Sequence record: OR620964.1
Strand: one strand, 5' to 3'
Length of the DNA: 64,000 nucleotides
This document shows positions 3,522-63,186 of this stretch, one piece after another. The position numbers and the translations under genes were made by a program. Each line of letters begins with the position of its first letter. The first letter of the stretch is position 1. A model generated the notes under the pieces. It was given only the letters and a program-made list of their open reading frames with translations. It had not been told where the DNA came from and made no database searches.

Positions 3522-4013
3522 TTAGGCGAAACGGCCACCTCTCCAAGCGGCTTTAATAAGCATCTTAGCGATCGTTTCATTCTTCATTATTTTTCTACTG
3601 GCTCTGCGCATAACACGAGCACTGCCCAACCTATACACGACGATAAGACCACAACCCTGTTCTTCAATTCGGGCAATAATTCTATCTCCGTGCGATGCGT
3701 AGAGCGTTTCGTCAATCGCAAAATAAACACGCATAGCAAACGGCAGATACTTATGCCATTTTTTATCCGTATTGAAATCCTGCCAGCAGCTTTTGACCTC
3801 AGTGATAACTATATCAGACTTGGTATTTAAACACCAGACGTCTGCTCTAAGGTTACCGTGTTTGATTAGACCAAACTCTACGTGGCAGGAGTATCGTTTC
3901 TTGTTCCAGTACCCAACAATGCTTTCAGTAATGAAGTTAGTCTTATCGGGTCTGCTCATTGACACAAAATCTGCGACGGGCTTACACTTTACGCTGCCTC
4001 GTCCTCTAACCAT
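3522..4013 (-). CDS. MmcB-family DNA repair / PD-(D/E)xK endonuclease-like protein
   Basis: LRADVWCL...ITEVKSCWQDFNTDKKWHKYLPFAMRVYFA matches the MmcB pattern RAD...EVKSS..DF..D.KW..Y...C..FYFA. Confidence 0.8.
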   Translation of the reverse strand: MVRGRGSVKCKPVADFVSMSRPDKTNFITESIVGYWNKKRYSCHVEFGLIKHGNLRADVWCLNTKSDIVITEVKSCWQDFNTDKKWHKYLPFAMRVYFAIDETLYASHGDRIIARIEEQGCGLIVVYRLGSARVMRRASRKIMKNETIAKMLIKAAWRGGRFA

Positions 4014-4459
4014 TAACTATGTTTGGCCAGAAGTTTAAGGCCTTTCATCAGAATAGGCAGGAAGCCTTTGTCAATCTTGCTTACCGCTTTATCGACAGAG
4101 AACCATTTGCGGTCGCGCTGGTTAACTTCCATGTAGTCCTGTTTCAGCTTAGTTACATGCATCAAGTACCAAGTAACGTGCTGACGGCGACCTGTAGAAC
4201 CTTTCACGTATTCAGATTGACCAATCACCATACCAGGGCGTCCAATTGCTCCGGCTTCTTCATCTGCTTCTTTCAATGCAGACTCAATAAGAGATAGGTC
4301 AGGCTCAAGCCCACCTTTAGGCAATCCCCAATTGTTCGCATGTTTGGTTTTGATCATTAGTATCTCGATCTCACCTCCCTTAATACGATATGGAACAACG
4401 CCTGATTGAATACGTGCTGCTTTTTCTGCTTTGGCAGATAGTGAGATCATTATCTCCAT
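4013..4459 (-). CDS. NUDIX hydrolase
   Basis: Nudix box LPKGGLEPDLSLIESALKEADEEAG. N-terminus M-I-S-L-S-A. Confidence 0.92.
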   Translation of the reverse strand: MEIMISLSAKAEKAARIQSGVVPYRIKGGEIEILMIKTKHANNWGLPKGGLEPDLSLIESALKEADEEAGAIGRPGMVIGQSEYVKGSTGRRQHVTWYLMHVTKLKQDYMEVNQRDRKWFSVDKAVSKIDKGFLPILMKGLKLLAKHS

Positions 4460-4962
4460 TATAAGTAATCTCCACCACGAGGACGCGATTTATCATATCC
4501 CCATGCATTATCTTTCCAGTAGCCCATATCATTCAGGCAACGAACTGCATCAACAATCGATACCGAGGCTGCTACGTCCATAGACCAAGGAACATCTGAA
4601 TAAGGGATTAGGTAGGTGTATGCGACATTAGGAACATATGACATACGACTGCCTGAATTAGAATCAGCAACAGGACAGCCATCAGCATCGACAACAATGC
4701 AGTGGCCAGACAGACTTGATCCTAAAATAACAACGCGTAAATCTGGATGCTTACGGTAGTTACGCTGAATAAAGGAAGCAGCGTCATTAAAGCAAAGTGC
4801 CTTAGCTGCGGCACGACCACAGTTAGAGATAGAAGAAGCCTCTACTATAGAACGTGCACCAGTAAGGTTCATGGAAGCAGCAACTACCATCACAGCCAAG
4901 TCCTTAGGCGCTAGTTGTGTTGGATAGAATGTCGTGCCCCATGCTTCTTTCAAAGTTAACAT
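4459..4962 (-). CDS. Hypothetical protein (167 aa)
   Basis: ORF with GGAG SD; its stop overlaps the next start. Confidence 0.65.
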   Translation of the reverse strand: MLTLKEAWGTTFYPTQLAPKDLAVMVVAASMNLTGARSIVEASSISNCGRAAAKALCFNDAASFIQRNYRKHPDLRVVILGSSLSGHCIVVDADGCPVADSNSGSRMSYVPNVAYTYLIPYSDVPWSMDVAASVSIVDAVRCLNDMGYWKDNAWGYDKSRPRGGDYL

Positions 4963-4993
4963 GGTGTGTTCTCCGTTTGAATGTTACGCTGAT

Positions 4994-5004
4994 AAATTAG
5001 CGTC
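4994..5004 (-). promoter_or_regulatory. GACGCTAATTT late-promoter-like motif
   Basis: ACGCTAATTT also occurs at 18344-18353 and 48251-48260, upstream of both sheath genes. Confidence 0.45.
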
Positions 5005-5314
5005 ATTTGTTTGGACAGTCAAGCACTTGCTTCCGTTTGGCGTAGAATGATGGAGGTGCTGATCCAATGACAATACCAAGATTACACAGCTTGGCTTTGA
5101 CCCTGCTAACATTTAAGGACACACCACTGACATTAGTTAAAAAGCTAGATGCGAAATCACCACACAGGTGCAGCGTATGACCGTAATAAGGTTGATTCAG
5201 CTTTTTCTGTGTACGAGCAATAAGTGCCTGTATTGTTTTCGTATCTTCCTTAGTAACAGCTCTACCGCAGTACACATCAACATTCAACATTGTCATTAAT
5301 AAAGGCTTGCCCAT
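5003..5314 (-). CDS. Hypothetical protein (~100 aa)
   Basis: ORF in operon; exact start uncertain. Confidence 0.5.
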   Translation of the reverse strand: MGKPLLMTMLNVDVYCGRAVTKEDTKTIQALIARTQKKLNQPYYGHTLHLCGDFASSFLTNVSGVSLNVSRVKAKLCNLGIVIGSAPPSFYAKRKQVLDCPNK

Positions 5315-5930
5315 CTATTGCTCCAGCGTGGTTAACTACGTACTCGATATAGTACGGTGTCATGCCTAAGGCACGAGTATGATCGGAAATGCTGACACAT
5401 AGAGCATCAGCATTGAATACGAATTTACGCTCTAGATATAAGATATCAGGAACGTCTTGTCTATCCGTCACAACTTCATGGCCGTTAAGAATCCCGTTCT
5501 GGAAATCAAACAGTGCGATTCTACGCATATTGCCAACAGGCACCTGCATCGAGCGAAGTATATTCATGCCCTCGCATTCTTCGACAGTATACACCGATAC
5601 TCTTGTACTGAAATAAGAGGATAGGTGATTGCTAAGAGCATCACTAACCAATCCAATACGAGAAAGATCTTGGCTTACAATCTCAAGCCCAAAGCCATAG
5701 TATGGCATACTGAAATGCTCAAAATTGGCTATGGAACTATCGGCATCTAAGTGCATAGGCTGGTCGAAGAATACAAAAGCATTCTGTGCAACGAACTGCT
5801 GTATCTTTACAGCTCGCGATCCAGATTCTATCAAGTTGTCGAACTGGACAACAAACTCCATGTTACGTACCGCAGGCATACCTTCCTTTATATACGTAAC
5901 ACGTTGGGTAAATTGGTGTACAGTGCGCAT
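5277..5930 (-). CDS. Hypothetical protein (217 aa)
   Basis: ORF in operon. Confidence 0.65.
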   Translation of the reverse strand: MRTVHQFTQRVTYIKEGMPAVRNMEFVVQFDNLIESGSRAVKIQQFVAQNAFVFFDQPMHLDADSSIANFEHFSMPYYGFGLEIVSQDLSRIGLVSDALSNHLSSYFSTRVSVYTVEECEGMNILRSMQVPVGNMRRIALFDFQNGILNGHEVVTDRQDVPDILYLERKFVFNADALCVSISDHTRALGMTPYYIEYVVNHAGAIDGQAFINDNVEC

Positions 5931-5939
5931 ATCATGCCC

Positions 5940-6650: not shown

Positions 6651-6658
6651 GCCGTTTC

Positions 6659-7447
6659 CTAGTTAAGATTGATAGTCTGACCATTGACTGTGTACTCACC
6701 ACCAGCAGTGGTATCGATAGACCCTTTAACATCTAGTATATCTTTTCCATGTACAACAACTTTTCTATCGCCGTATACCTCAGTAGTCTGATTACCTCGG
6801 ACAGACGTATGCTGCGATCCTGCTTTAGCTCCTAAGAGACCAGGAAACTTAGCTCTGTTCTTTGGATCAGGCTTCAATGACTTGACCATATAGTTAGGGT
6901 CATTACGTATATAGTCAGGCACATCATTTTTAGTATCAGTCACAGCAATGGTCTGATTGCCTAGGATTGTCTGAAAGGCATCACCCATTATCACTACATG
7001 CCTATCACCAGGGTATATCACAATCGTCTCATTCGTTGAGCGGTCGTGAATATCCTGCTTACCGCTAGATAGATGATAGCCTATGCGATGAGGATAGTTG
7101 GTTTGGAATTCTGGTAGTTGGTCGGCCTGAGTCATTCGCACATTTGTGCTATACTCACCGGAATAAATGTCACCTGAGGGGAATTTAACACTGATTTTAG
7201 CATTTCGTTGAGGAATGTACTGAGTGCCAAATCGGGTCACCTCATTACCACCTTTATACCCCTCTAGGTGCTCTATAGTAGGCCGTAACCACGGTAGTTG
7301 CTCGTCCGGTATGTCATCCATGATTCCTGCGATACGTGCCCGAACCTGCATAATACGCTGTGGATCATTATTATCTGTTACTATGGCATCATATGACATC
7401 TGGGCATCGATGCCTTTCTTAGAGACATGCCCATTAAGTGGCATCAT
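6659..7447 (-). CDS. Baseplate central spike (T4 gp5 / P2 gpV / VgrG-like OB fold plus beta-helix)
   Basis: AIVTDNNDPQRIMQVRARI...LPWLRP is the typical gp5/gpV OB-fold start. The C-terminus has short V.G/T beta-repeats (VRGNQTTEVYGDRKVVVHG) and ends in INLN. Confidence 0.85.
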   Translation of the reverse strand: MMPLNGHVSKKGIDAQMSYDAIVTDNNDPQRIMQVRARIAGIMDDIPDEQLPWLRPTIEHLEGYKGGNEVTRFGTQYIPQRNAKISVKFPSGDIYSGEYSTNVRMTQADQLPEFQTNYPHRIGYHLSSGKQDIHDRSTNETIVIYPGDRHVVIMGDAFQTILGNQTIAVTDTKNDVPDYIRNDPNYMVKSLKPDPKNRAKFPGLLGAKAGSQHTSVRGNQTTEVYGDRKVVVHGKDILDVKGSIDTTAGGEYTVNGQTINLN

Positions 7448-9330
7448 GCGTTAGCCCTCGGTAGGTACATTTCCAATTTCTGCCCGTCTTTAGTTCCTGT
7501 CAGATTACTACCATCTACAGTACCATCGCCTAACGAACATAATAAGTTTCGAAGGTTCTCTTCTGCCTGACGGAGAAGCTGACTCAAGTTTGTACTTGGT
7601 CCCATGAGACTTCCGATAGAGAAGGCATCCATACATTTATCAGGCAGTGCATCATTAACGGACTTCTGTAGGTCATCAAGTTTATTACTGACACAGCGTT
7701 GATTAAGCTGAGGCCCATCTAAATAGGATGATGGTATATCACCACTAGAAATCAATCCATTTATATCACCAGTGAACGAACCTAACAGACCTTCCATGCT
7801 ATCAACACGAGAAGCCAATGCAGATAAAATAGTTGGACTCATATCAATAACAAGGTTAACACTAAGTTTCTCAAGCTGATTAAGTGCTTGGCACATTCCA
7901 CTTAGGAATCGGGCCATAGAGAACTCTTGCATCAGGCTGTTCAAATAGTCCACGCCTTCGCCGTACTTAGCCATTAGCTCAGGAAACTTGAACACATCAC
8001 TATCGAGTTGGAACTGGTCAAGCATTACGTTAAGTCTAAGGTCATGATTCTGTGATATAAAATCAATAACACTCGAACCATCAAGAGCTTGCTTGATATT
8101 TTCATTCAACTGGAATGGGCGCAGGATATTTGCAACGGAAGGTACAGGAACGTTGATTATGTTCTTACCACCACCAACGTTTGTTGTTCCAGCAACAGAT
8201 GTAAAGTTACGAGTAAGCAGAAATGCTTCGGCATAGATGTTGCCTATATAGCTTCTCGTCTTTCCAATAACTACCCAATTACCACTTGTCTTCTCGTCTG
8301 TATGAGAGGCGTTAACAGCAGTAGTGATTGTTGATTTAACTTCTACGCACTGGAATATTTCAATATTTGTTTCACCCATGATAAGCGCACGGGCTGTCTC
8401 AGTATACGCAAGAGACTGTCTCTTCCAGTTGTAGTAAGCAGGCAGATAGTTTTTATGCAGGTTAATATCAGTAGTATGCCGAGCATACGCCTGTCTCGTA
8501 CCGACAATACCATCACGCGTATCGGAGTTAACGTTGAGTGGATCTTTAGACATCACGCCTATGGATTTAAGCTCATTCGTTTTACCATCAGATGATGCCC
8601 ACAATAACTTCTCACCGTAGTTGGACACGCCGTTGAATACGCCACTAACAGACTTGGGTCTGAATTCATGCAGTTCGTACTCACCTGCACGTCTCTCCGT
8701 ATTAAAACAAAGTACGTGGTCGGGCTTACCCGTAAGCACTTTATTAATATCACGCACAAGCATACGCTTATCAGCAGTTAGTGCTATCTTGGGCAGTGCC
8801 TCATCTGATACCCACATATGCTGCTCTATTTCAGAACAGAATCGTTTTGGGCTTTGAGCCATACTAACCCACGTCATGTTATCTGTGGTCTTTACGTTGT
8901 TATCGAGCGTCAGGCCACATAGATTACATATCTTGGCAAGTGCATCAACCGATGTTCCTTGGATATGCAGACCCTTAGAGTCGTATACATAACGAGTTGC
9001 ATCAAAGATGGATAAGATACGCAGTAGCTTAGAGCCATCACCAGAATCCATTTCACGCACGGCACACACTTGGAAGTTTAGAGTTGTGATACTATCCTCA
9101 CTACTACCAAATGAGACTGTTACAATCGTACCATCTACTACTGCATGTGAGTCACGCAGCGCATTGTTCCTGTCCACTAACTCCATAACCAGTGCTGGAA
9201 TAGAGAACGTATTTTCAATCACATCCATTCTACGGATAAGATTAGGCGTAGGAGGAAGAGGCTTGCCATCAAGCTCAATGGCAAGAAATCCCTGTCCATG
9301 AACACCACCGCCAGTTTGTTCTTCGGCCAT
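7444..9330 (-). CDS. Baseplate hub protein (gp27/gpD-like) with C-terminal extension
   Basis: Immediately upstream of the spike; beta-rich N-terminal ~390 aa. The call rests mainly on synteny. Confidence 0.6.
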   Translation of the reverse strand: MAEEQTGGGVHGQGFLAIELDGKPLPPTPNLIRRMDVIENTFSIPALVMELVDRNNALRDSHAVVDGTIVTVSFGSSEDSITTLNFQVCAVREMDSGDGSKLLRILSIFDATRYVYDSKGLHIQGTSVDALAKICNLCGLTLDNNVKTTDNMTWVSMAQSPKRFCSEIEQHMWVSDEALPKIALTADKRMLVRDINKVLTGKPDHVLCFNTERRAGEYELHEFRPKSVSGVFNGVSNYGEKLLWASSDGKTNELKSIGVMSKDPLNVNSDTRDGIVGTRQAYARHTTDINLHKNYLPAYYNWKRQSLAYTETARALIMGETNIEIFQCVEVKSTITTAVNASHTDEKTSGNWVVIGKTRSYIGNIYAEAFLLTRNFTSVAGTTNVGGGKNIINVPVPSVANILRPFQLNENIKQALDGSSVIDFISQNHDLRLNVMLDQFQLDSDVFKFPELMAKYGEGVDYLNSLMQEFSMARFLSGMCQALNQLEKLSVNLVIDMSPTILSALASRVDSMEGLLGSFTGDINGLISSGDIPSSYLDGPQLNQRCVSNKLDDLQKSVNDALPDKCMDAFSIGSLMGPSTNLSQLLRQAEENLRNLLCSLGDGTVDGSNLTGTKDGQKLEMYLPRANA

Positions 9331-9332
9331 GA

Positions 9333-10692: not shown

Positions 10693-10703
10693 TCAATGTT
10701 TCC

Positions 10704-14858: not shown

Positions 14859-15374
14859 TTATTGAAAAATAAGACGCTGTGCATCACATTGGAATTGTAC
14901 ACTTATCATCCCACGCCCACCTTGACCATTAAGAGACAAAGATTGTAAACCTAATGGCCAGCAGTTGCGTACTTCGGATGTTACTATCACATTTCCTTTT
15001 ACATCATACAAGGCTATTTGTAGGTTCTTCTTGTAGACAGATGGTAATCTGAATCCGCCAGTATATGGATTCTGAATAAGACCTGACCACGCTTGAAAAT
15101 ACCTTAATACAGCAGCCTTTTGGTCGATGCCAAACATCGCAGGAAACCCTTCCACAGAAGATCCTTGTGGAAAGTGGATACTGGTGGAGGCTATCTCTTT
15201 TGATTTCACTTGGAACACAGGGAACGGTATTTCTATTTCCTCACAGGCAGCAGAACTTAGGGATACACCGCCTATAGTGGGAAAGGATAGTATACGCCAT
15301 TTCTCTGTAGTGTAAGGATCTGCAAGGCCAGGCTGTGAGGTATCTTGCAGTTCACGTAATGTCACAGCAGCCAT
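14859..15374 (-). CDS. Tail tube-like protein (T4 gp19-like), copy 2
   Basis: 171 aa. The C-terminal pattern IALYDVKGNVI....VRNCWPLGL..LSL matches the gp19 family. Confidence 0.75.
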   Translation of the reverse strand: MAAVTLRELQDTSQPGLADPYTTEKWRILSFPTIGGVSLSSAACEEIEIPFPVFQVKSKEIASTSIHFPQGSSVEGFPAMFGIDQKAAVLRYFQAWSGLIQNPYTGGFRLPSVYKKNLQIALYDVKGNVIVTSEVRNCWPLGLQSLSLNGQGGRGMISVQFQCDAQRLIFQ

Positions 15375-15377: not shown

Positions 15378-16046
15378 TTAATCCTCAACAATGATCAAGC
15401 ATGGTCGTACAACACCGTCCACTTTCATAAGAGCAGCACCTATCAGATAGCCAGCAGTCTTGACTGTATTAACTACGGCTTCTTCTAGATCTTTCTCCCA
15501 CTTCTCAGTCTTCTTCGGCCCGTACGGACTAAATGAATCTGTGGCATCATAGTAGTTATACGTATCTCCTGTAGGCATTGGAATGCGCCCGAGGAACATA
15601 AGCCTGTCAGCACCTTTAATCTTGGCCTTACGAATTGCTTGTGATAACGCAGTATTCTCTGACTTAGATCCGGGCACAGCAGTATAGGTGACAACCGTAG
15701 GTGACTTAGCATTGGATGAAGGTAGCTTCTCACGCGCAGGAGTAACAGATGACTTACCCTTTACCTTGATACCACTAACACTACCATTAAATGGTCTACT
15801 TCGACCAAGCAGAGAACGGGCAGTCGCTGCATCGATTTGAAATACAACTGACGGGTCATCACGATGAAGAACATAAAACATATTCTTCTTTACCGCTTTG
15901 ATTCCATACACATCTTTCGGGTCGATGTCGGCTTCGTGCGTCTTATTCTCTATAGCAACCTTACGCTTTCCTTCGAATCTATACCAATCACATTCGGCAA
16001 TCGAAACAACAGGTTTCTTCGCGCTAGTGCTAAGTAAAAGAAGCAT
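15378..16046 (-). CDS. Hypothetical virion protein with shared W-Y-x-F-x-G domain (222 aa)
   Basis: Start reassigned to ATG 16046 (GGGAGG SD). MLLLLSTSA N-terminus; WYRFEGKR...DPKDVYGI motif. Confidence 0.65.
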   Translation of the reverse strand: MLLLLSTSAKKPVVSIAECDWYRFEGKRKVAIENKTHEADIDPKDVYGIKAVKKNMFYVLHRDDPSVVFQIDAATARSLLGRSRPFNGSVSGIKVKGKSSVTPAREKLPSSNAKSPTVVTYTAVPGSKSENTALSQAIRKAKIKGADRLMFLGRIPMPTGDTYNYYDATDSFSPYGPKKTEKWEKDLEEAVVNTVKTAGYLIGAALMKVDGVVRPCLIIVED

Positions 16047-16090: not shown

Positions 16091-16603
16091 TTACGATACT
16101 TTCAGCGCGTAGTCGAAGGACCATTCAATTGTAACTGGTACTGCTTGTGCTGCACCACTGAACGTCAGGTCAGGAACCTGCTTAGGCCATACGCCATAGA
16201 TGTCATACTCTGCGGCAATGCTACCATCCTGCTTAAAGATACGGAAGATTGCTTTAACAGCGTAATCAGCTTTAACAGCACCCAATTGAGTTTCAGTTGC
16301 ACGAATCAAATCATGCCACTCTTCAATTGGTTTGTAGATTGCCATTTCAGCATTCTCATTGTACTCAGTAGAGAGTGAGTGAGTGAAGATCTTTCGGCCG
16401 GCATAGTTAAGCTGGTGGCCAAACGCTTCTTTCAACACTTCTTCTACAGTGGAGCCGGGCTTAACACCTGTCTTACACATGATACGCAATGACCGTGCGT
16501 AATCACTACCACCAATCGGTGGATTTGGAATTAAGAATTCGAAGTTATCATCCAACAGCGGGTCTGCGGTGGATGCGAATTCATCCAGAGTTACCTTTGA
16601 CAT
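16091..16603 (-). CDS. Tail tube protein (T4 gp19-like), copy 1
   Basis: Directly after the sheath; IFKQDGSIAAEYDIYGVWPKQV...FSG...TIEWSFD. Confidence 0.85.
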   Translation of the reverse strand: MSKVTLDEFASTADPLLDDNFEFLIPNPPIGGSDYARSLRIMCKTGVKPGSTVEEVLKEAFGHQLNYAGRKIFTHSLSTEYNENAEMAIYKPIEEWHDLIRATETQLGAVKADYAVKAIFRIFKQDGSIAAEYDIYGVWPKQVPDLTFSGAAQAVPVTIEWSFDYALKVS

Positions 16604-16615: not shown

Positions 16616-18301
16616 TTAGACAGCGCCTTTGTTAACCAAATCCAGTGCGTATTGAATATCACCGACAGGTGGTACGATAGCGTTGATGTGAATACGCTTG
16701 GTATAACGGGTAGGGTCAAGGTAGACGTCAATGATGAGGTCACCACGAGCTTCATCCATTGCAGTGTTGTTTGTGTAGTTACAGACAACATCATACCAAT
16801 CCAGACCACGACCTAACTTAATAGGCTGTAGGATACTAACCATACCTGTCTTCTGACGCTCTTTCAGGATATCGTCATTTGGTTCGAATACAGAAACCAA
16901 ACTATTCGCACGAACAGATGCATGAAGCATAGCAAGCATACGACGAATACCGATATCATTAAGAGGACTCTTGGTAGTCATTGTGGTATCAGCACCCCAC
17001 ACATAAATACCTTCACCGTTGAATACAGCAATCGGGTTAATCTGATTCTCTACAAGCATATCACGGTCATTCTGTTTGAACCGATGACGGACGTTGGTTG
17101 CGAAGTCAAGATTACCACGATTCAGACCACCTGGTGCAAGCCATGATGCTACTTGGTCAGCAGTCAGCATACAGTATGCCATACAGACAGACGCAGGCAC
17201 ATAGAAATCACGGGCATTATCACTATCACGCGCAAGCACATCACTATTAGTCAGTGCTGTCCAAGAACTAATGACAGAGAACTCAGCGCCTTTAAACTCT
17301 TTGTTGCCACGACGGTACTGAATAGCATTATCACGACTCTGGTACTGAACAGGAATACCTGATGTAGCGATACAGTCCATACGTGATGCTGCTAACTGAT
17401 CAATAGTGTTTGCAATCACAGGATGCTCTAATCCACCAGAGCACAGAATGCCTGCTTGAACATCTTCCCAATCGCGATAGTTATTCCAGCCTTCAAGAAC
17501 AGCAGACAGGGAACTATTAGCAATCAGTGCATCACTATGGTTGATATCAATAACTTGACCATCAGATCCGCCAGTGAACTGACCGTTAATAGCAGTCGGG
17601 TCAGACAAATCAGCAGGGCCACCGCCAATAGCGTTGATAACAACAAAGTTAGGATCTTCCAGCAGCTTATAGTTATCTTCATTGAGCTTGAATCGAACCA
17701 AGTTAGACTGATTGTTAATCACGTCTTCAATGAAGAACTGGTTACCTGCTTCATCAACATAATACTTGGTTGTTACAGGCCAAGTCTCAGCAGGAGTTAA
17801 GTTTCCTGAATGGTATATTTTGATGATTGCTTTAATACCTAACGGGTCTTTCGTGTCAGGTTCAAACGTTGCGTACAGGTCATTAGCACCTGCATAAGGC
17901 GAAGCAGAATAGAGCAGTCCAATATCACGGTCATTAAACGCAATGATTTCTGGATCAGTCAGTCCGCCATCACCAAGTGGGCGACATGTAGCAAAGTTTT
18001 CGTACATGGTGAGGAACACACCAGCGTACTTAACTGATAAGGCAACGCGTGTGATGTTAAGACGAATAGCCTTACGCATCAACAGTTTGGCAATCTGTAC
18101 ACTATTAGAATAGCGACCAGTAGCAGGCCCAAACTTAGCATCAATCTCATCAGTGGAAGTTACTGTAGTGTCTACACCTACGGGGCCTCGCGGGAAAGGA
18201 AGAACAAGTGTACAAACTCCGTTAGTTGCCAACGTAGTCTGATTCGACCTGTCATTCTCCTGAGAGTATACACCCGGTGATGGGTGATTAGGTTGTAGCA
18301 T
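16616..18301 (-). CDS. Tail sheath protein 1
   Basis: SPGVYSQE start, PRGPV, GGSDG, WLAPGGLNRG, QINPI, VWG..T, IRRM, PTRYTKRI: T4 gp18-family motifs. Confidence 0.93.
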   Translation of the reverse strand: MLQPNHPSPGVYSQENDRSNQTTLATNGVCTLVLPFPRGPVGVDTTVTSTDEIDAKFGPATGRYSNSVQIAKLLMRKAIRLNITRVALSVKYAGVFLTMYENFATCRPLGDGGLTDPEIIAFNDRDIGLLYSASPYAGANDLYATFEPDTKDPLGIKAIIKIYHSGNLTPAETWPVTTKYYVDEAGNQFFIEDVINNQSNLVRFKLNEDNYKLLEDPNFVVINAIGGGPADLSDPTAINGQFTGGSDGQVIDINHSDALIANSSLSAVLEGWNNYRDWEDVQAGILCSGGLEHPVIANTIDQLAASRMDCIATSGIPVQYQSRDNAIQYRRGNKEFKGAEFSVISSWTALTNSDVLARDSDNARDFYVPASVCMAYCMLTADQVASWLAPGGLNRGNLDFATNVRHRFKQNDRDMLVENQINPIAVFNGEGIYVWGADTTMTTKSPLNDIGIRRMLAMLHASVRANSLVSVFEPNDDILKERQKTGMVSILQPIKLGRGLDWYDVVCNYTNNTAMDEARGDLIIDVYLDPTRYTKRIHINAIVPPVGDIQYALDLVNKGAV

Positions 18302-19444: not shown

Positions 19445-19897
19445 TTACTTGCGGCGTAACTTAAGACAGGAAGAATTTGATGGGATGTATTCCTCATCTT
19501 CCTCTTCGTTTGTCTCGTCTTCATCTTCATCTTCATCATCGATTGATGGATCAAGGTCGAAGACGATATCTGAATCATCTTCCATATTATCATCCATGTT
19601 ATTGGACAGGCTATGGAATTCATCATCACCGTATAAGTCAGATTGTTTATTTTCTTCGTCCACTGTTACCAAGGAGGCGGACAGTGCGGCTATTGATTCA
19701 GATAGAGAGTCTTGGCTGGAGCTAACAGAGTTAACCATGCATTCGGCGACAAAGTTATTCGCCAGAGTCTCTTCGAGAAAGGCTTCACTGTCTGGTGCAA
19801 CGGCTGCCTGAGCAAGAAGACGAGCAGCATCTACATACTGCCCTTCTCGCATAGCAATCATAGCTAGCGCCGCCAAGGAACTACAAACTTTACTCAT
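19445..19897 (-). CDS. Small acidic head-associated/scaffold-like protein (150 aa)
   Basis: Follows the capsid gene; D/E-rich C-half with several S-x-S motifs. Confidence 0.65.
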   Translation of the reverse strand: MSKVCSSLAALAMIAMREGQYVDAARLLAQAAVAPDSEAFLEETLANNFVAECMVNSVSSSQDSLSESIAALSASLVTVDEENKQSDLYGDDEFHSLSNNMDDNMEDDSDIVFDLDPSIDDEDEDEDETNEEEDEEYIPSNSSCLKLRRK

Positions 19898-19957: not shown

Positions 19958-21061
19958 TTACCCGCGCTGCGCTTTGGCAACTGAACGAACGTTAGCCAGG
20001 GTGAAGCTGAAGGTGCTAGACAGCAACCAACCGCGGTCAGTGTTACCAGCGTTTGCGCCAGAAGTTGGAGTAGACTGGGTGCCGCCACGAGTAGTATACA
20101 TTGCGTGGTAGTCCTGATCTGCAACAACGTACAGTTCGCCATTTTGCAACACACGATGCTCTGGTGCGCGGAAGCCATCAGTAATCAGCTCCATGCCCAA
20201 CAGCGTACCCAACTTACCAGTGATCAGCAAGTCATACTTAGACACAGGGTCTAATGCAGAAGTGAACTGGTCATTACCAACGATGTCGTTCCAGTAGTCA
20301 GCAGCCAGAACAGCAGTTGTTACTGGCAGTGGCCATGCTGATACGTGAGTTTTCAGAGAAGACAACAGGCGTGGAGTCAAGTCACCGTAGATATAGGTAA
20401 CAGGGTTAGCCAAGCCAGCAGTCGCATCACACGCTTTCTTCCACAGACGGTCTTCTGCAACCATGATAGAAGTCAGGCCATCTTGTTGCGCACGGTCAAG
20501 CAGGTCGCCGTTGATTTGATCCAGATCCATTTTGCTTACGCGGATATTGGATTTCAATTCAAACTCATCTGGAGTAAACACACGGCCGCGCAGCAAGCGA
20601 TAACCCAAATCAGTTGGGCCAGTCGCAATCATTGCTTCTGCTTGGTGGGTTTTCAATTCGATACGAGCGATTTCGCCTGAACGAATGGTTGAGCCTTTAC
20701 AAACACGACGCAGCAAGCCTTGACGCTCTGCACGGTCTTCGATAGAACCAACAATTGAAGCACCCAGAGAAGCCCACTTAGCGTTAGTGGAATCTGCCAG
20801 AGCTTCTTGAATCAGTTGCTCGTTAGCAGCACGGCGTTGTTCTGGAGTCAGGCCAACTTGTGATTCAGACACTTGAACCAGATTACCTTGAGAAGCTTGG
20901 CCCATCAATTTACTGATTTGTTGCAGCAGGTCTTTGCTATCATAGGCGTTGATCTCGCCGGTAGACTTAGACAACATGGTCTGGCCATTAAGACGCAGAT
21001 CTTCAATCGGTGCGCCGTCACGCAGAACAACTTTAGCGCCACGCATAGTAGTATTTTGCAT
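19958..21061 (-). CDS. Major capsid protein (HK97 fold)
   Basis: 367 aa in the head module. Features include LLRRVCKG, EFELKSNIRV, EDRLW, KLGTLLGMELITD and the terminal FSFTLANVRSVAK. Confidence 0.82.
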   Translation of the reverse strand: MQNTTMRGAKVVLRDGAPIEDLRLNGQTMLSKSTGEINAYDSKDLLQQISKLMGQASQGNLVQVSESQVGLTPEQRRAANEQLIQEALADSTNAKWASLGASIVGSIEDRAERQGLLRRVCKGSTIRSGEIARIELKTHQAEAMIATGPTDLGYRLLRGRVFTPDEFELKSNIRVSKMDLDQINGDLLDRAQQDGLTSIMVAEDRLWKKACDATAGLANPVTYIYGDLTPRLLSSLKTHVSAWPLPVTTAVLAADYWNDIVGNDQFTSALDPVSKYDLLITGKLGTLLGMELITDGFRAPEHRVLQNGELYVVADQDYHAMYTTRGGTQSTPTSGANAGNTDRGWLLSSTFSFTLANVRSVAKAQRG

Positions 21062-21871: not shown

Positions 21872-23953
21872 TTAGTAACCGCGAAGCAATGCATTGGCAC
21901 GAGCTTCGAAATCGCTATTCTGTGATGAGCTTTGTGATGTTACAGAGACAGGAGCCTGTTGGACATTCAAGTGCTGCAATGCAGGATTGATAGTCGTAGA
22001 TTGTTCCTGTTCCATGTTGGTTTCAGCAACTTCTTCTGCTTTGACCAAGCCGGCGGCATTCGAGATTGATTCTGCAATTTCATTCTGCGCTACTTCTGAC
22101 ATATTCATCAGAACAGCAGCCTGAGATACAGACGCTTTCAGGAATTCTGGGCTATTAGTAATGAACGCACGTTCAACCAGAGCACGAGGTTCTTTAATAC
22201 CAGCACTGCGCAATTGAGAGCACAGGCTTTCAACTACAGGGTTAGTCTTACCAGTCCAGAAGTTCTTGGTAAGGCCGAGCATTGCAGAGCTTAACGCTGC
22301 AACAAAACGCTCTTTATACTGTTCGTTAGACTGGGTGATAGTCTGGTTAACAGTAGCAGTGGCTGCTTCGACGCGAGTATCGGCTTCAACTTGCATCAAT
22401 TTTTCAACTGGCATTTCAATCTTATGCGCATCGAAACCAAAGTTAGAGCAGGTTTCAATCACACCGCTGGTACGCAGGCTTGCGCTTACAGCACGAACGA
22501 AATGTTCAGTTTCAAAGTTCTGACGAGCGTTAGCTTCGCCGATAGCATTGGACACAGAGTGGAATGTCGCAACAGCCAGCGGAGCACCGTCATAGAACAT
22601 GTGAACAGAATTTACCAGACCGTGAGAGGTACGAGACAGAGAAACGAGTGACGGATCAAGCGCTTCATGCTGTACTTTGGCAGAAGAGATAGAGTCAAAG
22701 ATGCGGCTAACAACCTTGTTGTTTGACATAGCTTCCAGTGTATCGGCATCAATGTCTTCGTCGTTAGCTTCGTCTTCTAATTCATCTTCTTCAATGAACA
22801 GGTCGTCTTCATCATCTTCGTCTTCATCGGAGCTTGATTCAGAATCGATGTCTTCATCTTCTTCTTCATCATCGTAGTCGAAGTCATCTTCTTCCAGATC
22901 TTCGTCATCTTCCATGTCTTCGTCTTCTTCATCATCGCCGGACAATGAGAGCAAACGTTTTACAGGAGTGCTGCCTGATTCAGAATCGAAGTCTTCTTCG
23001 TCTTCTTCGTCTTCGTCAAAGTCGTCCTCTTCTTCATCAAGGTCTTCTTCGTCGGAGTCATCGAAGTCGTCTTCTTCTAATTCTTCTTCATCGTCTTCGT
23101 CTGAGCTTGATTCAGAATCGAAATCTTCTTCGTCTTCGTCTTCTGCATCTTCGTCGATGTCAAGGTCAGTGCCTTCTTCATCGTCTTCATCGGAGCTTGA
23201 TTCAGAATCGATCAGTGGCGCCGAGCAATGAGCGCAGAATACAGGCTCTTCATCGGAACTCACAGTGACTGGGTGCGAACAGCCAGCAGAGCAACTATAC
23301 ATATGTGCTTCTACTTGCTCGTCTGCAACAACGGCAGATACAGAAGAAATATCTGTTACAGCAGAGGCGCTAACAACAGCAGCACCAGTGTATGGGTCAA
23401 ACTTAACTTCATCACCAAAGCTATTGAAAGAACCAGTAGCAGAGGAAACAGAGTTAATGCCTTCGCCAGACATTGCAGCTACAAACGATGCTTGTGCTTC
23501 TTCGGCAGTAGCGCCTACAACAACCAGACCGGTACGAGATACTGAATGTTGCTCAGACAGCTCGGTGCTCAGGTAATCGCGAACGCGTTCGTCAGTGATT
23601 TCTTCCAGATTACTTGAGCATGACGGGCAGTGGCTCAGGCTTTCTGTAGAATCGCTAACGATGTGTTTGCCACAGCCATCCAAACAAATGGTATACTGTG
23701 CGCGAACATCTTCACTGGATGATTCAGATGCGAATTCGATTTGTTGAACCAGCTCAGGGTTTTCAGACAGCAGCTCACCGCTACCATCAGGGTTGTACAG
23801 GTCAGTGCCTGACGTAGAAGCAAAGGCAACACCGCTTTTAGACATATAGAACATTACGTTCTCGCCTGTAGCCGCATTACGAAAGTTCTCAACCGCTTGA
23901 GCATGATTGTCACCGACGCAAAAAATCCCAGCAAGACTGGAAACTTTCTTCAT
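21872..23953 (-). CDS. Prohead core/scaffolding protein with two Cys-cluster repeats and a very acidic linker
   Basis: Duplicated N-terminal unit with CxxxC...CxxC, a ~155-aa D/E tract punctuated by DSES(S/G)S, and its position between protease and capsid genes. Confidence 0.7.
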   Translation of the reverse strand: MKKVSSLAGIFCVGDNHAQAVENFRNAATGENVMFYMSKSGVAFASTSGTDLYNPDGSGELLSENPELVQQIEFASESSSEDVRAQYTICLDGCGKHIVSDSTESLSHCPSCSSNLEEITDERVRDYLSTELSEQHSVSRTGLVVVGATAEEAQASFVAAMSGEGINSVSSATGSFNSFGDEVKFDPYTGAAVVSASAVTDISSVSAVVADEQVEAHMYSCSAGCSHPVTVSSDEEPVFCAHCSAPLIDSESSSDEDDEEGTDLDIDEDAEDEDEEDFDSESSSDEDDEEELEEDDFDDSDEEDLDEEEDDFDEDEEDEEDFDSESGSTPVKRLLSLSGDDEEDEDMEDDEDLEEDDFDYDDEEEDEDIDSESSSDEDEDDEDDLFIEEDELEDEANDEDIDADTLEAMSNNKVVSRIFDSISSAKVQHEALDPSLVSLSRTSHGLVNSVHMFYDGAPLAVATFHSVSNAIGEANARQNFETEHFVRAVSASLRTSGVIETCSNFGFDAHKIEMPVEKLMQVEADTRVEAATATVNQTITQSNEQYKERFVAALSSAMLGLTKNFWTGKTNPVVESLCSQLRSAGIKEPRALVERAFITNSPEFLKASVSQAAVLMNMSEVAQNEIAESISNAAGLVKAEEVAETNMEQEQSTTINPALQHLNVQQAPVSVTSQSSSQNSDFEARANALLRGY
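22741..23210 (-). repeat. Acidic low-complexity tract with four [IF]DSES[SG]S units
   Basis: The DNA unit tgattcagaatcga recurs near 22835, 22977, 23108 and 23198 among gaa/gac/gat codon runs. Confidence 0.85.
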
Positions 23954-33460: not shown

Positions 33461-33522
33461 ATGATTGTTACTCTGCTGGTTACGGATAGTGAAAATTATG
33501 ATCGGATGAAGAAAGCGGGGAA

Positions 33523-46551: not shown

Positions 46552-48225
46552 TTAGGCCAACGTTGTTGAAGTCGAGCCTTTCGGATTGATATTAAAGCGA
46601 TAGATAATGCGCTTGGTCGTTCTGGTAGGATCAAGAATAATATCCATGACCAAATCACCGTTTGCGATTGTCTGAGGCGTGTTGTTAACGTCATTACACA
46701 CAACAACATAACCTTGTGAACCAGAATTACCACCACGCAAACCACGAGCCAGCTTAATCTCTTCGAGGAATTTCTCTACCATAGCTTTAAGCTGTTGGCG
46801 TAGGATATCATCGTTTGGATCAAACAAGCCAATCTTAGCAGAGCGATGGCAGACTTCCAGCACATAGCTTACCATACGCTGAATAGGAACCATCTGGAAT
46901 GCGCTATCTGTATTCAGTAACGTACTAGCTTCCCAAATAGCATAACCACCGCCAAGAACAGCAGGAAGTTTCCTGATATAGTTAATCTGCTCACGGGTGA
47001 ATGCGTCACGATCTTCTTGGTCATACTTAAATCGTAGGCCAAGAATATTCAACTTAGCACTCGCTGTAATACCAGCAGGAGCAAACCACTGACCGCGATT
47101 ATTATCTGTCAGGCAGTATGCAGCAGCAACTTGACCAACGCATGGAACCCACAAGTAACGCCCTGTATCTTTGTCAAAGATTTTAATGTCTGACGTATAT
47201 AGAGAAACGTTTCGGGTATTCAAGTTCAGGATTTGGCGACGGTACTGAATAGCTTTCGTCACAGACTGATATGCAGTAGGAAAAGATCCAATTACATGAC
47301 AGTTGATATGCTTATCCGCAGTAGCTTTCATGGAGCGGTGCAGGATATGATCATCAAGCCCACTAGACACAAGAAGCGTTACACGCACTTCTTCTGGATC
47401 ACCGAAGTAATCCTCAAAGCCTTTGGCAATATCATCAGATGTGAGTTTATCACCATCATCGCCGCCTTTCATGAATACAAAGTCTGTAGTCAGGAATTCA
47501 ATATCATGAACAAAGTATTCGTTCTGGATAAAGCGGAAGTTAGAATCATCTTCCTCAAGGCACGTAGTAATTCGATACTGCTTATCAAAATCATCCTTGT
47601 AATCAAAGAGAGTACATGTATGAGTTTGTGCAGGTGAGCTACCATTCTCAAAGTTCTGGAACTCGTCTACGTAGAACTGTTTAGGGTTATACGAACGACG
47701 GTCATCAAATGCATTAAGCCCAAGTGGAACTGACGGTCTTACTTGCAGACTCATCTGGTCGTTCCATTTACCTGGGTTCTCAAGAATGAAATAACCAATA
47801 ATGTTATCATTCAGAGGATCAGTAGGTAGGAACCCTAATTGATCTGGACTATTAACACCTACTACATCGCCATTATCATCCACATAGTTGCTCAAGCGGA
47901 TAACTGGCTGTACAGCAGCAGGGTCATCAACAGTCAATACAGCTACAGCGTACTTGGCATTCTTAGCCAAGCGCACATACATCATGCTATTAGTTTGTTC
48001 AGAGATTGGTTCTGCAATGTACAAGCCCAACCCATATCGCGGATCGCGTTTGCCGAAGATATTGGTCAAATCATCAGGGCTTCGTACAGGCACACGTTTG
48101 TTGATTGAACCCTTGGCCGCCATACCAACCATTCCCACAACGGATGCTGCCAGCGAAGCAGCTCCCGGTGAAAGATCAGTTACAGAGGTATAGACACCCG
48201 CAGACTTGTGCGTGGTATTAATCAT
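46552..48225 (-). CDS. Tail sheath protein 2 (557 aa)
   Basis: Start reassigned to ATG 48225 (AAGGAG SD). SAGVYTS, KGSIN, GGDDG, WFAPAG, QINYI, IQRM, PTRTTKRI. Confidence 0.9.
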   Translation of the reverse strand: MINTTHKSAGVYTSVTDLSPGAASLAASVVGMVGMAAKGSINKRVPVRSPDDLTNIFGKRDPRYGLGLYIAEPISEQTNSMMYVRLAKNAKYAVAVLTVDDPAAVQPVIRLSNYVDDNGDVVGVNSPDQLGFLPTDPLNDNIIGYFILENPGKWNDQMSLQVRPSVPLGLNAFDDRRSYNPKQFYVDEFQNFENGSSPAQTHTCTLFDYKDDFDKQYRITTCLEEDDSNFRFIQNEYFVHDIEFLTTDFVFMKGGDDGDKLTSDDIAKGFEDYFGDPEEVRVTLLVSSGLDDHILHRSMKATADKHINCHVIGSFPTAYQSVTKAIQYRRQILNLNTRNVSLYTSDIKIFDKDTGRYLWVPCVGQVAAAYCLTDNNRGQWFAPAGITASAKLNILGLRFKYDQEDRDAFTREQINYIRKLPAVLGGGYAIWEASTLLNTDSAFQMVPIQRMVSYVLEVCHRSAKIGLFDPNDDILRQQLKAMVEKFLEEIKLARGLRGGNSGSQGYVVVCNDVNNTPQTIANGDLVMDIILDPTRTTKRIIYRFNINPKGSTSTTLA

Positions 48226-48307: not shown

Positions 48308-48781
48308 TTACACCCTTCTATATGTATCCAAGAATGCTTGTTTCTCAATCCTATAAATATCGCCATTTGGTTCAAATGTAATTGAGCACAAATAGTCTCC
48401 AGAGTTTAGGATCATGGGTTCTCCCCAAGAAGCAATAAACTGTAGAGAAGGTCCTTTATACCCAAAGGCATAGCAGGTACCAGTGGCAGAATACTTCTGG
48501 TCATGCGCGTCGGGCGAAGGTCCAGAGTATCGTTTTTTAAATTTGTCGATATCTATGACGTACTTCTCTCCACCAGGATTAGTGACAATCATGTCCGTAG
48601 ATTTTGTCACATTTTGTGTCTCTACTTTGCCTCCAATTTCTGTGACAACAGTTTCTCCACCAGAAGACTGACGAGCAAGTACATGGCCATACTTTTTGTA
48701 TTTATGAGCAATGTCCTTCTTCCAGTACTTGGCGATATCAGACTGCGTTAGAGCTTTACTCATAGACAGTTTTATTTTCAT
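48308..48781 (-). CDS. PGDYG-like protein (157 aa)
   Basis: DMIVTNPGGEKYVI...FKKRY and ASWGEPMILNSGDYL resemble the PGDYG family. Confidence 0.6.
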   Translation of the reverse strand: MKIKLSMSKALTQSDIAKYWKKDIAHKYKKYGHVLARQSSGGETVVTEIGGKVETQNVTKSTDMIVTNPGGEKYVIDIDKFKKRYSGPSPDAHDQKYSATGTCYAFGYKGPSLQFIASWGEPMILNSGDYLCSITFEPNGDIYRIEKQAFLDTYRRV

Positions 48782-54280: not shown

Positions 54281-54281
54281 A

Positions 54282-55340: not shown

Positions 55341-55594
55341 GCTTCAACATAGTCTCCACGAGTATTTGACCAGAACAAGTGAGTAGGTGTGCAAACAATT
55401 TCTTTGTCACCTACTGTAACACGACACATCTTCCTTACAGTCTTTTTCGTTCGAGATTCAATAGGTCTGAATTCCTGCTCACCTGTATCCAGATTTTTAG
55501 ACAAAACAGAGAATGGCATAGCATTACCTTCAACAATATCTGCGATATCAATCAAACCCTGTTCCGTCATAACCCGATGTCCGCGAGTGAAACA
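55277..55594 (-). mobile_element. Split intein, IntN (105 aa)
   Basis: Cys1 at codon 245 (55592-55594), block A (CFTRGHRVMTEQG), block B (IVCTPTHLFW, TxxH) and an acidic tail. Confidence 0.92.
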
Positions 55595-56326: not shown

Positions 56327-56328
56327 TT

Positions 56329-61933: not shown

Positions 61934-61967
61934 TTACTCGCCCCTAGGCTATGTTATAATCTATTTG

Positions 61968-61976
61968 TATTTACAG
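61968..61976 (-). promoter_or_regulatory. CTGTAAATA motif, copy 6 (upstream of polymerase)
   Basis: 35 nt upstream of the GTG start and just downstream of a terminator. Confidence 0.65.
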
Positions 61977-62008
61977 TTTCTGGTGCAGTAATGTGGCTAG
62001 CAGAAATG

Positions 62009-62035
62009 AAAAAGGGCAGCCCGGAGGCCACCCTT
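62009..62035 (-). terminator. Rho-independent terminator identical to 19390-19416
   Basis: AAGGGTGGCC-TCCG-GGCTGCCCTT followed by a U-tract. Confidence 0.85.
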
Positions 62036-62043
62036 TGTTTTCG

Positions 62044-63186
62044 TTACTTGCGACCTTTCGGTTTGATGCCATGGATATGTGCGCGCATCCCGCCGAAGTC
62101 ATTAACAGAGAAATCTTTGTCCTCTTCTTCCCCAGCAGAGACTGCCCACTTACCAGTGTCACCTGTGTAGTATGGGCCATCAAAGGTAATGAACACATGC
62201 GTGGATCCGACATGGCCGTCCATTTCCCACGGCTCACCTGGCTCTGACGTAAACGGTATTCCGTTATTGGAAATACCATACGTCAGAGCGTCTAAGCCAA
62301 GCACTTGCATCAGTCTCTTGGTGAAAGTAACGCGCTGGGAATTGTTCATGCGACGTAGTTCAGTAATTTTATAGGTCTTAGGCATGTCAACAGCTTTGAC
62401 TGCATTGAGGACTTTAGCCTTACCGATAACTGCTTTAACTTCTTTTGCTAGAGCTACCGCAGTTGGTTTACGCATGGGGCTACCAAACGCAAACTTGCCT
62501 GCTTTCGTTCTGGCGCTGACTACCCAGTCCGAAGAAGATGAATACTCATTGAAGTAGAATGGGGGATCGATATAGACAGCCGTGTACTTGCTGTTTGGAT
62601 TCGCAGATTCGAAATTCCAAACAGCAGACTGGCCATTGGCGTTTTCCACAGGCGTGCCAACAAACGTCATGCCAGTTGCGTCGGAGAGCTGTGCAGCAAT
62701 GCTGTCGATCTGAGCTTTGCTTGCGAGGCCAATAAACTTAGGCGTGATGCTGGTAATCGTAACCTTTGGCAGAGGCGTCTGTTCATCTGTACGAGTGACG
62801 GGCGCGGCTTTGACAGGAGCTTTGGTCTTAGCAGTAGGTGCAGATGCAATGCTTTGCGACATAGCTTTAGGTACTTTAATTCGACGTAGAGAATTAATCA
62901 CCTGTACGATAGTTTTAGATGCAGCTAGATCGGCATATGCACTAACAATAGACGTGCCTGTCTTACTCTTAGCAAAAGTCATCACGACATCTTCTTTATT
63001 GCTACTCAAGAAATCAAACAGTGGATTAATCTTGGCTTCTGTGTTCAGCTCTTTTGCTTTGTGGAGAACTTCCAGCGTTGCAAGAATCTTAGCACCCTTT
63101 GTACCGAAGAATGCTTTTGCATTTGCCGTCTGTAACTTAGTTGCAGATTCGGAGGAAATTGTTTCTTTGAATTTTAAAATAGACAT
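62044..63186 (-). CDS. Hypothetical probable virion/internal protein (380 aa)
   Basis: High-expression-like codon usage, ISSESA near the N-terminus and two similar C-terminal modules (PFYFNEYSSSSDWVVSA / GPYYTGDTGKWAVSA). Confidence 0.65.
   Translation of the reverse strand: MSILKFKETISSESATKLQTANAKAFFGTKGAKILATLEVLHKAKELNTEAKINPLFDFLSSNKEDVVMTFAKSKTGTSIVSAYADLAASKTIVQVINSLRRIKVPKAMSQSIASAPTAKTKAPVKAAPVTRTDEQTPLPKVTITSITPKFIGLASKAQIDSIAAQLSDATGMTFVGTPVENANGQSAVWNFESANPNSKYTAVYIDPPFYFNEYSSSSDWVVSARTKAGKFAFGSPMRKPTAVALAKEVKAVIGKAKVLNAVKAVDMPKTYKITELRRMNNSQRVTFTKRLMQVLGLDALTYGISNNGIPFTSEPGEPWEMDGHVGSTHVFITFDGPYYTGDTGKWAVSAGEEEDKDFSVNDFGGMRAHIHGIKPKGRK

Follow-up and report, generated by a model that had tools for sequence, protein, structure and literature searches.

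The 64-kb window analysed here corresponds to nt 1–64000 of the genome of Yersinia phage fHe-Yen9-02 (OR620964.1; 248,678 bp), with 100% identity and with coordinates that match those of the record. fHe-Yen9-02 is a 249-kb jumbo myovirus of the Lu11/PaBG/Dickeya/Erwinia group, and its minus strand carries nearly all genes of the window. An earlier note on this DNA had pointed to a recurring S-x-S motif in the encoded proteins, read as a candidate prohead-protease cleavage site and as the end of a capsid-targeting leader. Comparative analysis revealed that S-x-S is selected in head proteins and in several enzymes of fHe-Yen9-02 and its relatives. On the reading that we consider somewhat more probable than not from the sequence comparisons, the motif (a hydrophobic residue, S-x-S and a small residue; more widely, [S/A]-x-[S/A]) is recognized by the phage's own prohead serine protease (25125–25898, minus strand).

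fHe-Yen9-02 is syntenic with the Erwinia phages Yoloswag, pEa_SNUABM_3 and pEa_SNUABM_30 (Alexandra-like) and Y3, and with the Dickeya phages AD1 and JA33. The Pseudomonas phages PaBG and Lu11 are farther relatives, and all these phages together have been termed the "Lupandier group" (PMC7412058). A literature search found no paper on the biology of fHe-Yen9-02 and none that couples a prohead protease with S-X-S or A-X-A; the paper on the Dickeya jumbo phages contains no proteomics. The PaBG virion was analysed by gel electrophoresis and matrix-assisted laser desorption/ionization (MALDI), with 14 Coomassie-stained bands (PMC7412058).

Conserved Ser pairs in the window and the genome

Conservation was scored for 42 proteins of the window aligned with their orthologues from six relatives, a residue being counted as conserved when present in all genomes or in all but one. 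For spacings from 1 to 8, the conserved Ser-Ser pairs numbered 11, 26, 10, 10, 11, 9, 6 and 10; the excess is 2.5-fold and confined to spacing i,i+2 (Poisson p~8e-6), and no other residue showed a spacing-2 peak in these alignments. When all 400 conserved gap-1 pairs were scanned without bias, SxS ranked first (26 vs 10.1 expected, p=2e-5), as it also did within the head module (14 vs 3.7 expected, p=4e-5). The middle residue is variable at most conserved sites. The proposal that S-x-S punctuates the head-assembly proteins is therefore borne out by the conserved-pair tests, which describe a selected linear motif with a variable middle residue, densest in the head module. The note had also proposed Ser rather than Glu at the residue preceding the cut (P1). 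Half of this rule stands: conserved LxE, IxE, VxE, SxE, AxE and GxE pairs occur about as often as expected, whether the whole set or the head module alone is considered, i.e. motifs of the T4 or phiKZ type with Glu at P1 are not enriched. The other half needs widening, to a small-x-small signal that takes the form A-x-A in PaBG and Lu11 (see below).

Six of the 26 conserved SxS pairs lie within the first 20 residues of their proteins, which hold 5.3% of all residues (p=0.002); N-terminal conserved gap-1 pairs of other residues number at most one each, except for Leu, with four. Genome-wide counts were based on 305 open reading frames (ORFs) from our own gene calling, in which 58 of the 62 window calls sharing an annotated stop also share the start. 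In this set, [LIVMF]-S-x-S was found 16 times in the first 15 residues (7.05 expected, p=0.003). A genome-wide N-terminal enrichment of plain S-x-S did not appear (30 proteins vs 24.1 expected for residues 2–15, p=0.14). The N-terminal matches at 72929, 73824, 75851 and 101673 and in SbcD were dismissed, being unconserved or catalytic.

Four otherwise dissimilar proteins of the genome carry ISLS at residues 5–8. The Ser codons of the ISLS leaders are a mix of TCN and AGY that differs between genes, and selection must therefore act on the protein; a DNA-level cause was rejected on this ground.

The explanation to which we assign the lowest probability is chance, that is, a Ser-rich composition combined with a post-hoc choice of strings. 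The absence of plain N-terminal enrichment, the lack of conservation of several strings of the earlier note and the modest excess of conserved pairs outside the head module (12 at spacing 2 vs 4–9 at other spacings) are as it would predict. It is at odds with an excess that is specific for one spacing and ranks first among 400 pairs, and with three further results described below: the 2.3–3-fold excess over the protein's own composition in the scaffold-like proteins of seven genomes, the positional correspondence between S-x-S and A-x-A, and the conservation of leaders in at least eight unrelated proteins.

Sixteen of the 17 strings quoted in the earlier note are present in the annotated proteins of the genes to which they had been assigned. 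The missing one is MLISLSQ. The ORF at 26553–27596 (minus strand) reaches 225 nt upstream of the annotated start, where it overlaps the last part of the glycosyltransferase gene in a different frame, and this extension reads MLISLSQTPVWWNELTK...; MLISLSQ requires an unannotated ATG at 27590 and a 218-nt overlap with the glycosyltransferase gene, and the extension is not kept in relatives. MISLSA corresponds to residues 4–9 of the annotated NUDIX protein (MEIMISLSA). Across the six relatives ISLSA, LSTSA, HSLSA, LSESF, VSESQ, ASESSS, DSESSS (279), SVSSS and ESISA are kept; DSESSS (249 and 370), DSESGS and ISSVSA are kept in part, and SLSES and RSESA are unconserved. The four DSES[SG]S strings of the scaffold-like protein are copies of one internal acidic repeat. 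Short leaders ending in S-x-S are real in so far as they are conserved on several enzymes, while several of the listed cases are chance occurrences or belong to mis-started genes.

MNISLAR, which had been put forward as a variant leader of the ligase, lacks the second Ser in every phage compared. The NAD-dependent ligase of JA33 (31955–33925) has an additional MTDFK-SIS-AS before the conserved ISLKRL, other phages starting with M-x-ISL; this N-terminus could reflect either a leader specific to this lineage or a start called too far upstream.

Scaffold-like and capsid proteins

The head module has the gene order protease, metallopeptidase, scaffold-like protein, 236-aa virion protein, capsid protein, which is conserved in the Yoloswag, Alexandra-like, Salmond, Lu11 and RSL1 genomes. 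The acidic scaffold-like protein (693 aa; 21872–23953, minus strand) contains 29 S-x-S motifs, compared to 12.6 expected from its own composition (p<0.0005). With 21–28 motifs in its orthologues (7–12 expected), the excess is 2.3–3-fold in seven genomes. This protein holds 11 of the 26 conserved S-x-S sites, whose positions are fixed and whose middle residue varies.

Among non-acidic gap-1 pairs of the scaffold-like protein, S-x-S ranks first in each of the 7 orthologues; in PaBG and Lu11 this rank is held by A-x-A, with 27 (13.8 expected) and 31 (16.2 expected) copies, respectively. Conserved S-x-S sites are matched by [SA]-x-[SA] in 5 of 15 cases in PaBG (p=2e-4) and in 5 of 16 in Lu11 (p=8e-5), against a background of 3–4%, and several further S-x-S/A-x-A correspondences are displaced by one alignment column. 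Examples of replacements at aligned sites are SES by ALA, SCS by ACA, and SAS by AQA or AIA. GC content is insufficient as the sole cause of the switch from Ser to Ala, given values of 50.5% for Lu11 and 50.4% for SNUABM_3. As judged from these alignments, the determinant is small-x-small and not Ser as such, since A-x-A occupies matching sites; this argues against glycosylation or phosphorylation of Ser as the shared function.

A motif made of Ser modification sites would nevertheless have a candidate enzyme close at hand, as a beta-1,4-glycosyltransferase gene (27373–28623 in fHe-Yen9-02) is present in the head module of all relatives and could provide O-glycosylation; in addition, SESSS beside acidic runs resembles a phospho-acceptor cluster. 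We regard modification as very improbable, because A-x-A at the same positions in PaBG and Lu11 cannot be modified and because variants of the protease family carry Ala or Cys in place of the second Ser.

If the motif is instead recognized by the prohead protease, this enzyme would cut the scaffold-like protein at some 10–30 sites, into pieces small enough to exit the shell. The position of the gene in the head module, the extreme acidity of the protein and its 29 motif copies would fit a putative scaffold degraded on maturation. In PaBG, the list of 14 virion bands does not include the scaffold orthologue gp82, whereas its neighbours gp80, gp81 and gp83 are present (PMC7412058). An acidic protein of 150 aa (19445–19897, minus strand) also has an excess of the motif (7 S-x-S vs 2.8 expected, p=0.008), and its S57-V58-S59 (19721–19729, minus strand) is kept as S-[VF]-S in 7/7 genomes.

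The scaffold-like protein is named "ATPase" in GenBank and by its family, PHROG 20988, yet it has no match to a Pfam ATPase family. Its N-terminal third contains two C-x3-C...C-x2-C knuckle pairs, and a region of ~170 residues consists of Asp/Glu-rich repeats.

The major capsid protein (367 aa; 19958–21061, minus strand; phrog_2522) has the HK97 fold. Its AlphaFold2 (AF2) model, with a predicted local distance difference test score (pLDDT) of 88, matched the HK97, D3 and encapsulin shells with Foldseek E~1e-9 over ~270–310 columns. The capsid protein of phage G (282 aa, PDB 6wkk) is alignable only from query residue ~72–73 on, and residues 1–~70 therefore form an N-terminal extension. At the boundary of this extension stands V64-S65-E66-S67, followed by Q68, which would delimit a predicted propeptide of residues 1–67 (20861–21061, minus strand). 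The S-x-S of this site (site 2) is kept in 7/7 close genomes with x = E, V, H or Q; its Glu is unconserved, relatives showing S-V-S, S-H-S and S-Q-S. The linker around site 2 is variable, and S-x-S occurs there in 71 of 116 homologues (34.6 expected).

A second capsid site, absent from the earlier note, is L30-S31-K32-S33-T34 (site 1; 20960–20974, minus strand). L-S-x-S-T-G-E is kept here in 7/7 close genomes and in PaBG, and Lu11 has L-S-S-A. Among 116 metagenomic homologues, 77 have the motif in the same columns, with S, E, Q, A, K, T or H as the middle residue, and in 19 of the remaining 39 S-x-S is moved by a few residues.

Under the proposed mechanism, the protease would remove an N-terminal propeptide of ~67 residues from the capsid protein, comparable to the ~65-residue N-terminal piece lost by the T4 capsid protein. 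The predicted piece makes up 18% of the protein (67 of 367 residues), compared to the ~20% mass loss on maturation reported for the PaBG capsid protein; five PaBG virion proteins were found in several gel bands (PMC7412058).

The protease and the leader-bearing proteins

The prohead (head maturation) serine protease (257 aa; phrog_18299, "head maturation protease") begins with MKPQL-SES-F. Its predicted leader comprises residues 1–8 (25875–25898, minus strand), with S6-E7-S8 placed before F9, and S-x-S-F-D is conserved in 7/7 close genomes (x = E, H or K). Over 49–113 homologues the N-terminal consensus of the family is S-x-S-F, with the variants S-x-A-F, A-x-A-F and S-x-C-F; the length of the leader ahead of it varies, and the motif precedes the conserved protease body throughout the family. 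This arrangement is what would be expected if the protease trims its own N-terminus.

The enzyme was identified only through a fold search against predicted viral structures. Its AF2 model has a pLDDT of 87, residues 1–9 falling below 50 and being modelled as disordered. A BFVD search with this model returned 92 matches at E<=1e-3, many of them named prohead serine protease, COG3740 or XkdF; the best PDB fold matches were the KSHV and EBV assemblins and T4 gp21, and they were not significant. According to the model, the protease has the HK97/assemblin prohead-protease fold. Sequence searches of the PDB, with the single protein or a profile, gave no match, Pfam (including S78) none for any of 49 family members, and comparison with T4 gp21 revealed no sequence similarity (hhalign probability 0.2). 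The putative catalytic residues H122 and S179, located 57 residues apart, are invariant in 49 homologues.

The protease family also contains a nearly invariant C-x2-C...C-x-H (CCCH) insert resembling a zinc ribbon (residues 189–206), located just after the presumed catalytic Ser. We know of no such insert in T4 gp21 or HK97 gp4.

Leaders with the conserved motif were found on proteins of diverse types. The 222-aa KMPT-N protein (15378–16046, minus strand) begins with MLLLL-STS (16023–16046), and M-L-h-h-h-S-x-S-A (h, hydrophobic) is kept in 7/7 genomes (x = T, A, E or V). The 632-aa KMPT-N protein (31562–33460, minus strand), with its domain at residues 15–80, has the leader MH-SLS-A (33443–33460), kept as [HL]-S-x-S-A-[ST] in 6/6 genomes (x = L, V or E); the Lu11 orthologue has I-S-L-A-A-A in place of S-x-S-A. 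In the NUDIX hydrolase (4013–4459, minus strand) the leader MEIMI-SLS (4436–4459) precedes a domain that starts at residue 20, and [IV]-S-L-S-A is present in 6/7 genomes. The PGDYG protein (48308–48781, minus strand) begins with MKIKL-SMS (48758–48781), and its 54%-identical homologue P0235 with MKIKL-SLS; the leader of ~10 residues is missing from four more distant PGDYG homologues and is therefore an add-on to the domain.

The 380-aa protein encoded at 62044 carries S12-E13-S14-A15 near its N-terminus (63142–63186, minus strand). S-x-S-A-T-K is kept in 2/2 genomes, as S-E-S-A-T-K here and S-V-S-A-T-K in the JA33 orthologue, and a paralogue outside the window (123815–124624) begins with MKTV-SIS-A. 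The 589-aa protein (664–2433, minus strand) has an internal copy, S130-I131-S132-A133 (2035–2046), located just upstream of its KMPT-N domain (residues 137–200) and kept as S-x-S-A in 7/7 genomes (x = I, E or M).

The window also contains the 3′ end (63858–64000) of a gene for a 2458-aa helicase (63858–71234, minus strand), whose N-terminus, MLI-STS-K, is encoded beyond it. [IF]-S-T-S is present in 4/4 genomes, including Yoloswag, SNUABM_3 and JA33. The homologous PaBG helicase (35% identity over 1130 aa) has N-S-L-S-A-A at residues 8–13, and this 221-kDa protein is band 1, the largest, of the PaBG virion (PMC7412058). PaBG gp83, a virion protein encoded beside the scaffold gene, begins with MLIKINLLE-AVA-AK. 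Two other proteins encoded outside the window keep the motif in 4/4 genomes: a basic 143-aa protein at 91153 (minus strand), with [IV]-S-L-S, and a 425-aa protein at 76951, with [IL]-S-[TA]-S.

The NUDIX, PGDYG, 222-, 632-, 380-, 143- and 425-aa proteins and the helicase are dissimilar beyond their leaders, except for the KMPT-N pair. The leaders have 5–15 residues in total, of which 3–5 are hydrophobic. They are far too short for Sec or Tat signal peptides and lack a hydrophobic core of 10–15 residues, and this possibility was ruled out.

M-x-I-x-I-S-L-S begins three small proteins: a GNAT-like protein of 131 aa (83213–83608), the basic 143-aa protein (91153–91584) and an acidic protein of 93 aa (115484–115765). 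The 143-aa protein (pI 10.9; leader kept in three relatives) resembles a T4-style internal protein.

The description of the motif carriers as unrelated is accurate only in part: the 222-, 632- and 589-aa proteins all have the Pfam domain KMPT-N (PF20294). This domain is common to four paralogous proteins encoded in one 33-kb stretch (664–2433, 15378–16046, 24039–25124 and 31562–33460, minus strand), and a literature search did not find KMPT-N by name in any paper. S-x-S was detected in 34 of 47 cluster representatives of the family, and [SA]x[SA] in 41 of 47, at most 20 residues upstream of the domain and in a terminal or internal position. Such an element fits a cut that would expose KMPT-N as the new N-terminus.

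The same element could also belong to an uncleaved docking or structural feature. A short extended strand that binds the scaffold, portal or capsid protein would then be lined on one face by the small side chains of residues i and i+2, or these residues would form an integral N-terminal strand of KMPT-N, and maturation cleavage would take place elsewhere. The association of S-x-S-A with KMPT-N in 34 of 47 diverse homologues, internal copies included, agrees with this view, as does the interchange of Ser and Ala, which any requirement for small residues would produce. One conserved site in a likely tail-side protein points the same way, cleavage at the motif being a prediction in all these phages. 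We nonetheless hold docking to be unlikely. The motif recurs in unrelated contexts (the boundary of the capsid extension, the N-terminus of the protease, the NUDIX, PGDYG and helicase leaders), and the first nine residues of the protease are modelled as disordered. Moreover, 20–30 copies per scaffold-like protein recall the protease sites of T4 gp22 and of the phiKZ/SPN3US propeptides rather than a single dock. In PaBG, maturation costs the capsid protein ~20% of its mass, and none of the virion bands corresponds to the scaffold orthologue.

The fourth KMPT-N protein (361 aa; 24039–25124, minus strand) has no leader. Its KMPT-N domain occupies residues 6–65 and is accompanied by an HExxH motif that is conserved in relatives. 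It is probably, on the basis of this motif, a zincin-type metallopeptidase and the second peptidase of the head module. This enzyme, or another phage peptidase, might cleave the motif in place of the serine protease. In every close relative its gene immediately follows that of the protease, it shares KMPT-N with three motif-bearing proteins, and SprT-like metallopeptidases were noted in this phage subgroup by Iyer et al. (PMC7824862). Set against this are the presence of the motif at the N-terminus of the serine protease itself in >100 homologues, as autoprocessing predicts, and the status of assemblin/HK97-fold prohead proteases as established maturation enzymes. PaBG and Lu11, in addition, keep small-x-small, yet the surroundings of their scaffold genes revealed no syntenic orthologue of the KMPT-N metallopeptidase. 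Cleavage by the metallopeptidase is therefore judged improbable.

One KMPT-N gene (15378–16046) sits between two tail-tube paralogues. Both the tail-tube genes (14859–15374 and 16091–16603) and the tail-sheath genes (16616–18301 and 46552–48225) are duplicated on the minus strand, and two more genes (37611–38741 and 38756–39727) are labelled tail sheath. Duplication of tail-tube and tail-sheath genes has also been described in PaBG (PMC7412058). A DNA motif, CCCTTT(T)...TTTCTGGAG, was identified just before the start codons at 16046, 73768 and 91584 (minus strand) and at 115484 (plus strand). It is also found upstream of the orthologues in relatives, where extended ORFs read it as PFF[IV]SG, and it may combine a late promoter with a ribosome-binding site.

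Proposed maturation signal and known systems

From the above we infer that the motif is cleaved, that the cut follows its second Ser, that the prohead serine protease is the enzyme and that the leaders direct proteins to the capsid. Besides processing the scaffold-like protein, the capsid protein and itself, the protease would act on proteins that assemble together in the head core, stripping them of short hydrophobic leaders or of longer pro-domains. The set trimmed in the core would comprise the NUDIX hydrolase, the PGDYG, KMPT-N and 380-aa proteins and, from outside the window, the giant helicase and the basic 143-aa protein. The leader plausibly doubles as a tag that draws proteins into the core, like the T4 capsid-targeting sequence (CTS).

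Several observations weigh against recognition by the prohead protease. Genome-wide, plain S-x-S is no commoner in the first 15 residues than chance would give, and clear false positives exist, e.g. I-S-T-S-D-W-H of SbcD, which is its catalytic motif. The scaffold orthologue of RSL1, a farther relative, has no enrichment of S-x-S or A-x-A, S-x-S is missing from capsid site 2 in both PaBG and Lu11, and the JA33 NUDIX protein has no leader. The N-terminal region of the capsid protein is modelled as folded (pLDDT ~80–85), although this is compatible with a pro-domain. Since S-x-S-A is found upstream of KMPT-N throughout that family, it could be part of the module structure, and the three carriers are not independent; furthermore, the gene of a second peptidase (24039–25124) adjoins that of the protease. 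Finally, a 628-aa protein (7444–9330, minus strand) keeps S-x-S at residue 227 in all close relatives (x = L, M, S, T or V), with SVS in Lu11 and SSA in PaBG. Its gene lies among baseplate and lysozyme genes, so that a head protease should not reach the product, and the site is not explained by this model.

The workings proposed for fHe-Yen9-02 resemble those of T4 gp21 and the CTS in having a protease encoded in the head module, degradation of the scaffold at multiple sites and self-trimming. Another likeness lies in N-terminal leaders of ~10 residues on otherwise unrelated head-packaged proteins, targeting and cleavage being predictions in the present case. T4 gp21 cuts after Glu in (L/I)-x-E. 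In fHe-Yen9-02, unlike T4, h-x-E is not enriched and the conserved positions are Ser or Ala. The structural match between the protease and T4 gp21 is weak (E 0.07, TM 0.44), and the former carries a CCCH zinc site.

The proteases phiKZ gp175, SPN3US gp245 and that of 201phi2-1 (S/A/G-x-E, A-x-E) share the small P3 and the free P2. In this group, processing affects many head and ejection proteins and always concerns N-terminal propeptides, which contain several copies of the motif. For the SPN3US enzyme, which cuts at A-x-E, a preference for Val (P4) and Ser (P1′) has been described (PMC10052503). fHe-Yen9-02 differs from the phiKZ/SPN3US group in its putative P1, which is Ser or Ala and not Glu, and in its leaders, which mostly have 5–15 residues. 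It is not a chimallivirus: its capsid protein, of 367 aa, is of the HK97 type, and the scaffold-like protein is a separate product. To our knowledge, prohead-protease motifs have been defined for only a few lineages (T4, phiKZ/SPN3US), all with Glu at P1. By analogy, the small-x-small rule would resemble the workings of T4 gp21/CTS and phiKZ/SPN3US but lacks the Glu at P1 that defines both.

The best-supported fold relatives are proteases of the HK97 gp4 type (MEROPS S78, COG3740, XkdF), with BFVD E values of 1e-7 to 1e-4. The fHe-Yen9-02 protease differs from them in its extra zinc-ribbon insert and in the absence of a Pfam S78 match among the 49 members. The HK97 protease is targeted via a C-terminal tail, and we know of no S-x-S rule described for HK97. 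The cleavage site of herpesvirus assemblin is (V/L/I)-x-A | S, while type I signal peptidase follows the A-x-A rule. A likeness to both would lie in the putative small P1 (for signal peptidase also P3), the PaBG/Lu11 motif being literally A-x-A. In contrast to signal peptidase substrates, the carriers described here are cytoplasmic and their hydrophobic stretches have 4–5 residues.

More tentatively, and with somewhat less than even confidence, we propose that the whole jumbo-phage lineage (the Lu11/PaBG/Dickeya/Erwinia/Yersinia phages and many metagenomic relatives) uses an undescribed small-x-small prohead protease, with S-x-S in the enterobacterial and A-x-A in the Pseudomonas branch, and that the leader serves as a portable targeting and propeptide tag. 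The switch from S-x-S to A-x-A between branches would then be a compact case of substrate-motif drift within one protease family. If true, sequence alone would list the injected proteome: the ~270-kDa helicase, the NUDIX, PGDYG, GNAT-like and basic internal proteins and the proteins headed by KMPT-N. With the Ser/Ala rule, mature virion proteins and injected enzymes could be read from genomic and metagenomic sequences, and a short tag would be at hand to bring foreign proteins into the capsids of this group. The rule would also flag early-acting injected effectors (helicase, NUDIX, KMPT-N) with possible roles in host takeover or against host defences.

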